Assembly (NCBI GenBank): GCA_907165135.1
Contig: OU015569.1
Location: forward strand, 8,866,001-8,930,000
Length of the DNA: 64,000 bases
Direction of reading: 5' to 3'
Source of the DNA: Oikopleura dioica
Lineage: Eukaryota; Animalia; Chordata
The position numbers were made by a program, and so were the translations under genes. Positions 3,394 through 62,154 of the stretch are shown here, piece by piece (positions within the stretch are counted from its first letter, which is position 1; each line of letters starts with the position of its first letter). The notes beneath the pieces are model-generated. The model was not told the origin of the DNA, made no database searches, and saw nothing but the letters and a program-made list of their open reading frames with translations.

Positions 3394-4463
3394 TCGTTGA
3401 ACATCGATGTCTTGAAAGAACTTTAATTTGCAATCAGAGAAAGCGTCAGATACTCGACGGATGAAATCCTAGACCTGGGACCTCCATCCAGGTGCCAGGG
3501 AAAATTTTGGGCTTGCATTGCATTGAGGTTTTGAGGGAGTTCTAAACTCTGTAATGTTTTTACTGTAAGTCAAGGGCCAAAAGAACCAATTCTTTGATCG
3601 GTCGCCGAATTCGAGTTTTCTCATGCTATTTGTGCTAGAATTTAATTGTCGGTGCTCCTGCTAAAGAATTGGTCCTTATTAGCTCTAAAACTAGATCATA
3701 TCGATGAACTTGTAAGTGCACTTGAACTTAATTCGAAGAGTGATTTCGATTCTGTCTCATACCTGGCATGTCGCGTTTGCTATTACGATTTCTCTCTAAA
3801 AATGTGTTGTGAAAGTTTTTTCTTTGTTTGAACTTGTATCGTTTTTTTTTTTGTTTATTCGCCTGCGAATTCAATTCTTCAGGCAAATTTTCAATGCTAG
3901 TTTTATAGGCACACAGGGCAGCCCTATCATGGGCTGCCGTTGCGCAATAACCACCCCAAGTGATTCTGGTAACTTTGAGCTAACTACTTTTGAATCAAAT
4001 TTTTCACCCCTGATGAGGCTACTCAACCCTCATATGACTAGAATTAGGTCGCAGATTTTCAAATTATGATATGGTATAGGATCAAGCATAACAATTATAA
4101 TCAATAAAACGTCGAACTACAGGCAGATTAGTCAAAACTCATTCTTAGGTAAACAAAGAACCCGAGGAGTACGATAAATTTTGTAGGAGATAGAAAAAGA
4201 GTACATAAAAGTAAGTTTCTCTGCTTCTTTCGATTACGGTTTCCCTGAGGAGTTCTACAAATGAGTCAGATGAGAAGACCCCCAGGGCCAATCGAAACCT
4301 TTTCCGTCGTGAGAAAAGTATTTCAAAGAGCCAAAAAACAAAGAAATCGGTGCCTAAAACCGATGACTAACAGCGATATCGATCTGATAAAGGCTTTAAG
4401 TACCTGGGCATGTGAATTATGTAAGCCAGGGCTTATGTAAGTCTACTAACTCAAGCGAGAGCA

Positions 4464-57991: not shown

Positions 57992-60186
57992 TTATGGCTG
58001 GTGTTGGGCCCACTCTGCGCGAAGTTTTTGAATTATTTCATCGTCGTTGACTAAATGCTTGCACATCCGCTTGTTCTGCACTTGTTTCGGGATCAGTCCA
58101 GCTTTCTCGCGTAGCACCCCTAAAAATCAGTCAGCCTTGTGAATTAAGAAGAAAGTTCCGGGATGATCAAACGTGGGTATAAAAAGGAGTCTCCCTGTCT
58201 GTTTTGCTCATTTGAAAAAATAGCCAGCGATGGATGAGCAAGAGATGGGAGAGCAAGATTTGAAAATGAAGAGACTCTTGGACAACGCCGATGCTCTTAC
58301 ATATATACTCAACACTCTGCAAGTACTGAAATCTAAGGAAGGCGAAGAAGATGAGTTTCTCGTTAAATTGATGGATGATGAACGTAAAGCCCAAAAGGAA
58401 AAAGAGAAATTTGATATCGAAAATCGTTATAAGATGGAGAAGATTAGAGAACAAAGAGACAGAGCTGAGGAACGGCTCCATAGACTATGCATAGTAAATA
58501 ACTTATAATGATAATTAGCCGTATTATTAAAGGTAGAGCAAAGCAAAGAAACGATTAAAGGACTACAAGAAAACGATGGCGGAGCTTACCAAACAATATT
58601 ATTCGTTGGATCATAAAAAAAGCGGAGACACTGCCTTAGAAGCAACAGAGTCCTCAGAGCCTTCCGCAAAGAAAACAAAGCTGACTGAGCTCGAAAACTC
58701 TGACGAAGATGAATCTTCGTCCGAAGTATGGGTTGTATTCGAATCAAAGATATAGAAAAAAGTATCAAATCAGAGAAATAACCCAAACAAGGCTCACCAG
58801 TCCCGAAAGTAAGAGGACTAGATGGCAAATTGTACAACTTTTGGGAAGTCGACTCTACTCTAAAGTAAATCCAGACAGTACTATTTAAAATTGATATGTG
58901 ATAAAATACTGAAGAAAAAAACAGAAAAACTTATTGACACTGAAAAAATAAATTGAAATACGCGAACCTGTCAAATATGCATCATCAACAGGAGCATCGC
59001 GATAAGTAACTTGTGCGTTTTTGAAGAGTTTCACCGCTGCCCATCGTGGCATACTGAAACAGGCGCCCTCGCAGTACACTGGATAAAATTCTTTTCCGTA
59101 CGATTCCCACGATGTTTGCCATTTCCCTTTGCGCGTGACTCTAAAATCGTTGAATTTCGGACGCCAGTTATGCAAGAGTTTTACCTTGCGTGCTGTACGT
59201 AGTTGTACAAACAAGCCAGTTCAACTTGCGAGTTCTCGGCCTTATTGAGAAAGCCCAGTATCAAAGGTAAATCCGGAAAAACGTCGTCGTCGACTGAAAG
59301 ATAATTTCGTGAGTCCGTGCATTCGTTGGCAAACCATTGCAGTCCACTAATTGATTTTGAGGTTAGATTCTGATACGCATCAAGATAGTCGCCGACTTTT
59401 AAGAATGATTGGAAAAATATTTATGAAAATCGCAGGAGTATTTATCAATCACATTCCTAGCAGGTCTTGTTTGTCTCGCCCCTCGTTTTGCAAATTCTTG
59501 TTCAAGTACTTCGAGTCCGACTTTCCGACGAGAAAGATTGTGGCAATAGACCATTTTTCGATGGCATGCGTGTGAGCCCATGTATTTCGAATTATCTCTC
59601 GCAGGCCAGAGCTCTCAACGCGAGACTTTACGAAGATGACGAGGTCTTTCCGCACGCAGTCGACCTCTGGAGTGATCATGAACTCCAAATCTGGGACGGT
59701 AGTGTTGTCCGCGTAACGCTTTGGAATGGACTCATCTGGGTTCTCGGCGATCAGGTATCGAACTCGATCGATCAGTTGTGCAGTTTGGACTACCCCCTCT
59801 TTCTTTTGCAATTGAGCAAGCAGCGGGTTTCCTGGAATTACTTCCGCCTTCTTCTCTTCACTCTCGGGTTCACTTTCTTTGCTCGAAGTCTCCGAAGATA
59901 ATGTGGTGCTTGTCGTGCTCGTCGAAGACGTAGTTGATTTGAGCACTCGCGGTGCGCTTTTGTCGTGAAAGTCGATGTCTACCTCAAAGTTGAAAGCACG
60001 GGGAGTCCTCTTCTCTTTGTGCGGGATCGCTTTTCCATCGTCAAGACTGCTCGGTTTGATCTTCGAAACCAGGAACAGGTTGAAGACAATGAAGCAAAAG
60101 CCGAAAAACGCCAAAAAGTTCCTAACGAGTGATTCGATTCTACCAGGACCTTTTTTACGCCTTCTGCGCTTTCTCTCTTCACCCAT
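57992..60186 (-). CDS. Beta-1,3-glycosyltransferase (GT31, B3GALT/B3GNT-like), 4 exons, type II membrane
   Basis: TM near the N-terminus. Motifs LVIFVKS, LREIIRNTW, DLLVGDYLDAYQNLT, DDD, GKW, YPVYCEG, DDAYLT|GVLREKAG. The last exon (57992..58119) lies beyond an 848-nt intron. Confidence 0.88.
58230..58812 (+). CDS. Charged coiled-coil orphan protein nested antisense in the last intron of the GT31 gene, 3 exons
   Basis: MDEQEMGEQDLKMKRLL...LHRLCI | DYKKTMAELTKQ...EDESSSE | RNNPNKAHQSRK*, with GT-AG introns in phase 0. Confidence 0.65.
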
Positions 60187-60343
60187 TTATTCCATGCTCG
60201 ATTCAAGTACTGGAAAGAATTTCTCGCGAAAAAGAAAAAATCGCGCTTGCCCTGCGGGGATGTTTTGCTCTAACATTTTAAAAAGACTAAAATAACTTAG
60301 CCCTGAAATACAAACAATAGAAGATGTCCGATAAAACACAAAT

Positions 60344-61436
60344 CTATTCTCTCTCGTTCTTTCGCTTAAATAAGTCAATCAACAGTAAATGTATTTTCTT
60401 TCGCGCAGCCAAGAGACAGCTTGAACCATGCTCTGAAGGCTGTTGAATACTCTGGTTTCAGGTCTCGTCGTTACTTTGTCCAGCATATACATCAAGTGCT
60501 TGTGATAGGAGGAATACGGTATTCCAAGCTCAAGCGCTATCCTAGTCCATTCTGAAAAACTCTTTTAGGGCTTTAGTTAAGTAGAAGCTTCTCACCTGTT
60601 AACACTTCCGGATCTCCAAGGCGTCGCTCGTCGAACAGTCCTGGGTTGTGTAAAAGACCGCGTGCGACCATAACACCGCCAACACCAGTCGCCTCATATG
60701 CTATTTGAGCGTCTTCGCGAGTGCGAATACTTCCGTTGTAATTAACGGGAATGCTACAAGGAAAACAAATCAACTTTGCATTTTTAACTGACTGTTACCT
60801 CAAGGTTTCGACAATAGTTGAGATAGTATTTACTCTTACAGGGTGATCCCTTTCTCCATGCGTCCTACCATGAATCGACAACATGGTCGCGCCCGCCTTC
60901 TCAATTCTCCTGGCCATTTCGATTGTTGCTTGCAAGTCGTCGAAGACGCGCGTTTTGACAGAAATAGAAAACTGCGAATCAGGAATCGCCCGCCGCGCTA
61001 CCAAAATAATATCAGCCAGCAACTCGGGCTGCTTCATTAAGATGTCGCCGTAGTTGAGTGCGTTGACCCAGCGCTGAGGACATCCGCAGTTGAGGTCGAT
61101 TCCCTCGCAATGTCCGTAAAGCATTTGGGCCACTTGGGCGAAATCGTCGCCTTTGTTCGCAGCGAACTGGACGACGAGCGGCCCATCGTCCGCATTGCTG
61201 CGCAAATCGGCATCACGAGCAGAGGCCGAGTTGATGAACGAGTCCGAAATCAGCATTGGCGAGAAGCAGAGATCGACGTTGAACTTTCGGCAAAGTGCGC
61301 GGAAAGGGAGACGTGAGTAGCGCACCATTGGCGCGCAGATTGATACAAAACGGTTGTTTTCGCGAGCAGTAGAATAGATTTGGCGGATAGAGCCGAACCG
61401 GCGACGCCTCTCTTTTTGTAATTCATCCCTATCCAT
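60344..61436 (-). CDS. DUS4L: tRNA-dihydrouridine(20a/20b) synthase-like, 3 exons
   Basis: CAPMVRYSRLPFR, PLVVQF, IDLNCGCPQRW, IHGRT, PVNYNGSI, GVMVARGLLHNP, ALELG..HKHL..ML..RVFNSL match DUS4L. Confidence 0.93.
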
Positions 61437-61957
61437 TGAGTTTTCTCTCGGCGTACTCTTTTTCGAACTGGGCAAAGTACTCTTCGTCGAAGGCGGATTC
61501 CTCCTCCTCTACTGGCTTCTGCACTTCTGGCTTTGTCACTCCTGTGATCTTGCACCAAATATTGAAATCAGTGTCGACTCTGCTTTTCTGAACAAGACGA
61601 TGCTTCTGCGCCAGTTCCTTTTCTCGATCTACTTTCTAAAAGTATCGATTTATAGGTAAAGGAAATACGTGCTAAAATACCTTGAGTCTCTTCTCAGCGA
61701 TTTTCTTGTCGGCTACGTATTTGTTGTTGAGGCCGAAACGAGCACTAGCGGCTTCCTTGTTGGCTTTTTCTTGCTTTCGGAACTTTTTGTTCGTCTTATG
61801 CTTTTCGGTCTGTGCAGCTGCTGCCTAAAATAAATTTGATTTTTTGATTAACTATCATTTCCTGTTTTGCCTTTTGAGATTTCTTCTTGGTGAGTTGGGT
61901 GATTCTAACGTCGTCGCAGTCAAGGATTTCGAGTCCTTCGGCTAACAAATCATCCAT
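61429..61957 (-). CDS. RPS19BP1: Active regulator of SIRT1 / RPS19-binding protein 1-like, 3 exons
   Basis: N-terminus MDDLLAEGLEIL resembles AROS LLRRGLELL. C-terminus ESAFDEEYFAQFEKEY resembles TVFTEEDFQKFQQEY. Lys-rich middle. The acceptor TTCAG lies directly before the ATG. Confidence 0.7.
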
Positions 61958-62154
61958 CTGAACTTTACAATTCAAGAAAAGTCTTCCTAGATTCAGAATT
62001 ATAAACGCTTGAGTCTCCGAGACGAATCTAAAAATTTCTCTGTCTGCTCCGCCAATCAGCGCTCAAGGAAAAAATAAGCTAAAACAGATCTACTGAAAAG
62101 AGCATTTCTTATTTTTTGTCCGGCCGTTCTACCAACATCCTAACAGACGCACAA

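Follow-up and report, generated by a model that had tools for sequence, protein, structure and literature searches.

Introduction

Oikopleura is the textbook chordate that cuts its operon transcripts into single-gene mRNAs by spliced-leader (SL) trans-splicing, and the question taken up here is how two of its neighbouring genes reach the ribosome when the coding sequence (CDS) of the second begins before that of the first has ended. The genes are AROS (RPS19BP1), which encodes a 40S maturation factor, and DUS4L, which encodes a tRNA dihydrouridine synthase. They follow one another on the minus strand of a stretch of 64,000 nucleotides (nt) of the Oikopleura dioica genome (GenBank assembly GCA_907165135.1, contig OU015569.1, positions 8,866,001 to 8,930,000), which we call the window and whose own numbering is used throughout. 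An original prediction described the arrangement as bacterial-style coupling in an animal and offered three models: a stable bicistronic mRNA with termination-reinitiation, trans-splicing inside the last exon of AROS so that a given precursor would be made into AROS or into DUS4L but not both, and an alternative cis-splice giving a fusion protein. From comparison of sequences and transcript contigs we regard it as moderately probable that AROS and DUS4L form a stable SL-capped bicistronic mRNA which would be translated by leaky scanning. Taken separately, it is quite likely that most of the mature RNA is bicistronic, and if it is, a scanning-type mechanism is the likely means of translating it. 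The presence of both open reading frames (ORFs) on single molecules, the translation of DUS4L from such molecules and the route by leaky scanning are inferred.

Overlap of the AROS and DUS4L coding sequences

The overlap on which the original prediction was built is real. AROS ends in ...AAA CTC AAT GGA TAG and DUS4L opens with ATG GAT AGG from 61436, so that the two frames share 8 nt (61429..61436, minus strand, A ATG GAT AG), which take in the DUS4L start codon (61436-61434) and the AROS stop codon (61431-61429). The ATG at 61436 is the sole in-frame ATG between the stop TAG at 61511-61509, which lies inside CAGTAG, and the DUS4L motif CAPMVRYS; the nearby ATG at 61426 is out of the DUS4L frame. 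Also borne out was the absence of AATAAA before the end of DUS4L, both AATAAA and ATTAAA being missing on the minus strand from 62000 to 60300. An assembly error, which had been named as a possible refutation, is contradicted by the same AATGGATAG junction in two other O. dioica lineages (contigs L001, L010 and L011, and genomic contig L012).

The identities given to the two genes were upheld. DUS4L matches the Pfam family Dus with an E value of 4e-40, and its named matches are tRNA-dihydrouridine(20a/20b) synthase-like proteins at 42-49% identity. The AROS product of 145 amino acids (aa) is letter-for-letter that of CAG5098715.1 (Oidioi OKI2018_I69.XSR.g15911, Okinawa), which puts the window in the X-specific region. 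Its identity holds on weaker evidence than that of the Dus protein: on Pfam PF15684, exon 3 taken by itself gives 17.3 bits (E 0.007), short of the gathering cut-off of 27, full-length appendicularian AROS proteins have no Pfam match, and a PDB profile search with AROS returned no relative. In ESM-Atlas, by comparison, the AROS feature score is 0.96, with 212 of 256 features shared with AROS clusters and the family shared by 8 of the 10 best matches. The protein also has an AROS-like build (its size, a basic middle, an acidic stretch and the C-terminal F-D/T-E-E-x-F-x-x-F motif), and the UniRef name of the Bergen orthologue is '40S ribosomal protein S19-binding protein 1'.

There would be no true overlap if DUS4L started at the Met of CAPMVRYS or in an unseen upstream exon. 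The public DUS4L models point this way, as both start downstream: CBY25064.1 (Bergen) has 286 aa and begins with the Met inside CAPMVRYS, and CAG5098714.1 (Okinawa) has 262 aa, against 322 aa here. Yet the 36 residues before the CAPMVRYS Met are conserved from residue 2 and include the C-A-P of the family motif, and D2, R10 and F14 are invariant across lineages in the alignment. Also, the spliced contigs described below join no upstream exon to DUS4L and are colinear with the genome in this region. An annotation artefact is thus very improbable; the public models are N-truncated, apparently in avoidance of the CDS overlap, and are corrected here to 322 aa in place of 286 and 262 aa.

Transcripts spanning AROS and DUS4L

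To follow the two genes beyond the window we collected contigs by a protein search with DUS4L exon 1, exact look-ups of the matches and a scan based on an AROS alignment. Of those found, 12 are transcript contigs and 2 are genomic, and they represent about 8 lineages of appendicularians. The transcript contigs (L001-L008, L010, L011, L013 and L014) derive from different samples, assembled as transcriptomes in the JGI and Logan collections; the genomic ones are L009 and L012, the latter from a metagenome. Over the first 60 residues of DUS4L the contigs show 57-88% identity. In all 12 transcript contigs AROS runs on into DUS4L in cis-spliced form, and further contigs, about 1450-1570 nt long and so of bicistronic size, carry members of the DUS4L protein cluster. 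Six contigs (L001, L002, L005, L007, L013 and L014) have SL sequence at the 5′ end, 0-5 nt before the AROS ATG, and four others (L003, L004, L006 and L008) have a poly(A) stretch of A14-A24 after DUS4L. In two of the former, L005 and L014, the SL is complete (40 nt) and has CATGGGG ahead of it, which we take to be a template-switch remnant of full-length complementary DNA (cDNA). As seen in the contigs, the O. dioica SL has the sequence reported earlier (PMC6883708). No poly(A) follows AROS in any of the transcript contigs, and no contig reads through into a third gene. The contigs therefore do break at the gene boundary after DUS4L, which serves as an internal control. Of the first model, then, the stable bicistronic mRNA stands, with the SL before AROS and poly(A) after DUS4L; its termination-reinitiation part is taken up in the next section.

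These contigs bear directly on the second model, that of a squeezed SL operon, in which DUS4L would obtain an SL at an AG in the last exon of AROS (e.g. after TTTGCCCAG), each precursor would give AROS or DUS4L, and the bicistronic contigs would be precursors or assembly merges. It has precedents, since many O. dioica operons are resolved by this same SL and Ciona has operons without any intercistronic DNA (PMC1488885). Several AGs do lie upstream of the ATG at 61436, TTTGCCCAG and CAGTAG both being present where the original prediction had placed them. Precursors also do get sampled, as seen from the outron-bearing reads and contigs (L006, L010 and loose ends of RNA run X8), and one metatranscriptome contig, record 3 of X1, ends exactly at 61429. 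Against this, we found no SL beside DUS4L in the contigs of any lineage, and a pattern scan of JGI contigs (SL 3′ end, 2-32 nt, DUS4L start) gave 0 matches. The junction-bridging contigs are intron-free with SL and poly(A) ends, unlike precursors, and they do break at the next gene boundary. Cleavage of the upstream mRNA ahead of the second gene, as expected in an SL operon, is not seen here: the spacer is -8 nt, neither AATAAA nor ATTAAA is present, and poly(A) occurs only after DUS4L. The squeezed operon does not require an AUG-free stretch over the whole AROS ORF either. As the two CDSs overlap, resolution would truncate the mRNA of one product. We therefore find no sign of the proposed trans-splicing within the AROS last exon in these assemblies, which may hide a minor isoform, and consider it rather unlikely. 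A Ciona-style acceptor at the AG of the AROS stop itself (61430-61429) was considered separately and rejected: the resulting mRNA would drop the ATG at 61436, and its first AUG, at 61426, would be out of frame.

The third model calls for a splice from the AROS exon-2 donor to the acceptor at 61509 that ends CAGTAG, giving an AROS-DUS4L fusion protein. Such a splice would keep the phase, and from 61508 onward the DUS frame has no stop in its way. But the joint is absent from the mapped reads and from all of about 14 contigs, and other lineages, in which the spacing is different, do not conserve CAGTAG as an acceptor. Nor did a protein search with the 322-aa query, which allowed candidates up to 563 aa, return any appendicularian DUS4L ORF of fusion length, none of the matches exceeding 338 aa. 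A fusion protein is accordingly the least credible of the explanations and can be given hardly any weight.

Start codons and the AUG-free AROS reading frame

In all 8 lineages with enough sequence, the 348-438 nt that separate the start region of AROS from the DUS4L initiator hold no ATG in any frame. In the window this AUG-free mRNA stretch covers the exonic parts of 61437..61950 (minus strand), 417 nt once spliced. The sole extra ATG, present in some lineages, belongs to a 3-codon mini-ORF overlapping the AROS start, which in the window runs out of frame with AROS in its exon 1 from ATG 61953-61951 to TAG 61944-61942. The DUS4L CDS of the same transcripts, used as control, holds 1.5-3.0 ATG per 100 nt. 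The probability of finding no ATG ranged per lineage from 0.006 to 0.47 when synonymous codons were shuffled and from 0.009 to 0.105 when codon order was shuffled; its product over six diverged clades under synonymous shuffling is about 6e-7, the clades being taken as independent. On the side of the start codon context, position -3 of the AROS AUG is C or T in the 7 lineages with upstream sequence, the window (TTCAG ATG) also having C.

The distance from the AROS stop to the DUS4L start is far less constant. It is -8 nt in the window, L001 and L010, +4 nt in L006, +6 nt in L005, +1 nt in L002 and L004, +12 nt in L007 and L008, and -83 nt in L003, L009 and L013. Conservation of the overlap in relatives, which the original prediction had proposed as a check, is thus found in part: three O. 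dioica lineages (the window; L001; L010 and L011 with genomic L012) have the same -8 nt, and the distance differs in other lineages. Taken together, 7 of the 8 lineages have the DUS4L start at a distance of -8 to +12 nt from the AROS stop. In the remaining clade (L003, L009 and L013) the usual DUS4L ATG is gone, the DUS frame reading AAT GAT at this site, and an ATG formed from GAT GAC in the F-D-D motif of AROS opens the DUS frame instead and is, once more, the first AUG. At this F-D-D site the other lineages have GAC. A 1-nt assembly error behind the missing ATG of L003 was considered and set aside, as the same feature is seen in genomic L009 and in the transcript contigs L013 and L014.

With these distances the remaining part of the first model can be weighed. 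In termination-reinitiation, ribosomes finishing AROS at the TAG would remain on the mRNA and step back by a few bases to begin again at the overlapping ATG. The mRNA is bicistronic as this mechanism would have it, and the proximity of stop and start, seen in all but one of the 8 lineages, has been kept over deep divergence. But short spacers are equally expected from extreme genome compaction, and the mechanism neither needs nor explains a 350-440-nt AUG-free ORF. Reinitiation past a 145-codon ORF is, in addition, inefficient in eukaryotes without a dedicated element, such as an 18S-complementary TURBS by which the 40S subunit is tethered after termination. Because one clade starts DUS4L 83 nt upstream of the AROS stop, and the constant feature is the AUG-free AROS ORF, bacterial-style coupling is not the best fit, and we hold termination-reinitiation to be unlikely. 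The same constant feature favours leaky scanning.

In the leaky-scanning mechanism that we propose, one mature mRNA would be exported, from which all introns have been removed, with the SL joined by trans-splicing 0-5 nt ahead of the AROS AUG and with a poly(A) tail after DUS4L only. The majority of 43S complexes that scan it would initiate at the AROS AUG, which has a pyrimidine at -3 in every lineage. Some would bypass it, or would translate the adjoining 3-codon mini-ORF and then resume scanning. Both of these groups of complexes would cross about 420 nt without an AUG in any frame and would then initiate at the DUS4L AUG.

Several points weigh against this reading. The sole near-identical RNA available for the window, which is of the Okinawa lineage, is a marine metatranscriptome (X1; about 99% identical, depth about 4), and its contigs do not bridge 61398-61428. 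Its record 3, which is unspliced, breaks off at 61429, where the AROS stop codon ends, and this could be the AROS 3′ end or a break at a polymorphism; it carries no poly(A), and the adjoining contigs likewise end at polymorphic sites. The raw RNA runs X6-X8 are of North Atlantic type, like L010, a lineage that differs from the window by 5-10%, and their reads cover conserved patches only; 61105-61900 is uncovered, so the junction is outside their reach. The transcript evidence consists of short-read assemblies, in which a contig over two genes is not proof of a single molecule, and since assemblers take the majority path, a minor SL-DUS4L isoform could be hidden. As regards the AUG depletion, the lineages are related, so that the combined probability is approximate and its significance depends on pooling related lineages; within the O. 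dioica group the depletion is modest (P 0.15-0.47 under the most conservative null). Also, +4 of the AROS AUG is G, so the context is not extremely weak.

Gene structure and flanking features

All features below are on the minus strand. The AROS trans-splice acceptor is placed at 61962..61964, with the AG at 61964-61963 and the first mRNA base at 61962, the ATG following 5 nt further. This position is by homology with L001 and not from the window's own lineage: the 5′ joint of L001 has the SL 3′ part ...GATTGTCTAACAG joined to TTCAGATGGATG, and its counterpart in the window is ...TTGTAAAG followed by TTCAGATGGATG. In the North Atlantic lineage, L010 (1-1121) and some X8 reads (loose ends at 61964 of the window) extend from AROS exon 1 upstream without an SL; the extension crosses a spacer of ~150 nt into a divergent gene (a 224-aa ORF on the other strand) and is either a 5′ leader that has not been processed or a long outron.

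AROS exon 1 (61871..61957, ATG 61957-61955) has its end set by spliced L001 and by identity to the public protein P0124. Intron 1 (61825..61870) is a 46-nt intron with non-canonical GC-AG ends, the L001 junction of CAAAAG with GCGGCTGCT agreeing with CAAAAG, ...TTTTAG and GCAGCAGCT in the window; the GT donor at 61852 implied by the original prediction would make a 28-nt intron and is unused in L001 and in the public model. Exon 2 (61681..61824) is taken from the sequence and the gene model. Intron 2 (61636..61680; 45 nt, GT-AG) is spliced out in L001, L010 and others, and it is kept in X1 record 3; the homologous intron is kept in L014, P0135 and P0140. Intron-retaining AROS transcripts are thus found in several lineages (window 61429-61719; L014 190-393; P0135; P0140). 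Exon 3 (61429..61635) contains the conserved C-terminal SAFDEEYFxxFEKEY motif, as seen in the alignment, and ends with the stop codon.

DUS4L exon 1 (60799..61436) carries the Pfam Dus match and is followed by intron 1 (60754..60798; 45 nt, GT-AG), which is absent from X1 record 1, at ~99% identity to the window and of its own lineage. Exon 2 (60596..60753) is taken from the sequence and the spliced contigs. Intron 2 (60552..60595; 44 nt, GT-AG) is crossed by reads of the related lineage (joint 60549-60598), and exon 3 (60379..60551) ends in the stop TGA at 60381-60379. In L009, DUS4L has at 4045-4113 an intron that is absent from O. dioica; no GT-AG reading of it keeps the frame, and its ends read TT..AG or GT..AA.

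The 3′ untranslated region (UTR) of DUS4L contains a conserved GAATAGATTT block (60343-60352 in the window), common to the O. dioica lineages represented by the window, L006, L011 and loose ends of X6 and X7. Within it, AATAGA at 60343..60348 is a candidate non-canonical poly(A) signal of DUS4L with a predicted cleavage near 60325; the poly(A) tail of L006 begins 13 nt past the block. The next gene 3′ of DUS4L has a weak Galactosyl_T match. Its ATG is at 60188-60186 and it starts in ATGGAATAAATGGGT (60186-60200), where a 2-codon ORF (ATG GAA TAA) abuts the start of the Galactosyl_T-like gene and an AATAAA overlaps its ATG. L005 carries a similar AATAAAAATG 3′ of DUS4L.

Comparison with known systems

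In the ascidian Styela clava (L015, OZ123525.1, 8910-11346) the gene ~600 nt upstream of DUS4L is a glyoxalase-domain gene and not AROS, and the AROS-DUS4L linkage looks appendicularian-specific from the genomes compared. In the limited literature that we searched we found no account of a bicistronic mRNA being translated in Oikopleura. If our reading is true, one and the same animal resolves operons through the SL and also uses polycistrony at the level of translation, and the choice between the two can be tested at one locus. We would go further only tentatively, as the odds seem somewhat against it: appendicularians may keep a second kind of operon, in which gene pairs are left uncut, SL-capped as bicistronic mRNAs and leaky-scanned via AUG-free upstream ORFs, AROS-DUS4L being the first documented and possibly keeping a 40S maturation factor and a tRNA-modifying enzyme at a set ratio. 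A simple screen for similar pairs in compact genomes would ask for a spacer of <=12 nt and an AUG-free upstream ORF.

The nearest comparison within the genus is with the SL-resolved operons of Oikopleura, whose intercistronic spacing is 23-30 nt, and with the spacer-less operons of Ciona and the SL1-type operons of C. elegans (PMC1488885). With these the pair shares co-transcribed neighbours on the same strand, SL trans-splicing of the first gene and very tight spacing. It differs from them in that no SL is seen on DUS4L, no AROS 3′ end is seen and the CDSs overlap. Bacterial and archaeal stop-start coupling through ATGA or TGATG (PMC6728339), like viral termination-reinitiation, has the overlapping or adjacent stop and start that most of the lineages show here. 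In AROS-DUS4L, however, the length of the overlap varies (-8, -83, +1 to +12), and what is conserved is the absence of AUG, not the geometry.

Bicistronic genes with overlapping ORFs are known in animals from MOCS2A/MOCS2B. Another animal bicistronic gene is Sloth1/Sloth2 of Drosophila (PMC9681215). Leaky scanning is the way to the second ORF in these genes, as we propose for DUS4L. As in both of these, unrelated proteins are encoded on one mRNA by ORFs that overlap or nearly abut, in an arrangement conserved across species. In contrast to them, the present pair links 40S maturation to the synthesis of tRNA dihydrouridine, seems restricted to appendicularians and sits in an operon-bearing genome.

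The leaky-scanned bicistronic mRNAs of green algae have a weak start context on ORF1 and an under-representation of start codons before ORF2 (Gallaher 2021, PMC7896298; Duenas 2025, PMC11892635). AROS-DUS4L is set apart from them by belonging to an animal with SL operon resolution, by its trans-spliced 5′ end, by ORFs lying -83 to +12 nt from each other and by being known here from sequence alone. What it has in common with the algal bicistrons is a mature mRNA with a 5′ cap structure and poly(A), two conserved ORFs and AUG depletion, here at the level of assemblies.

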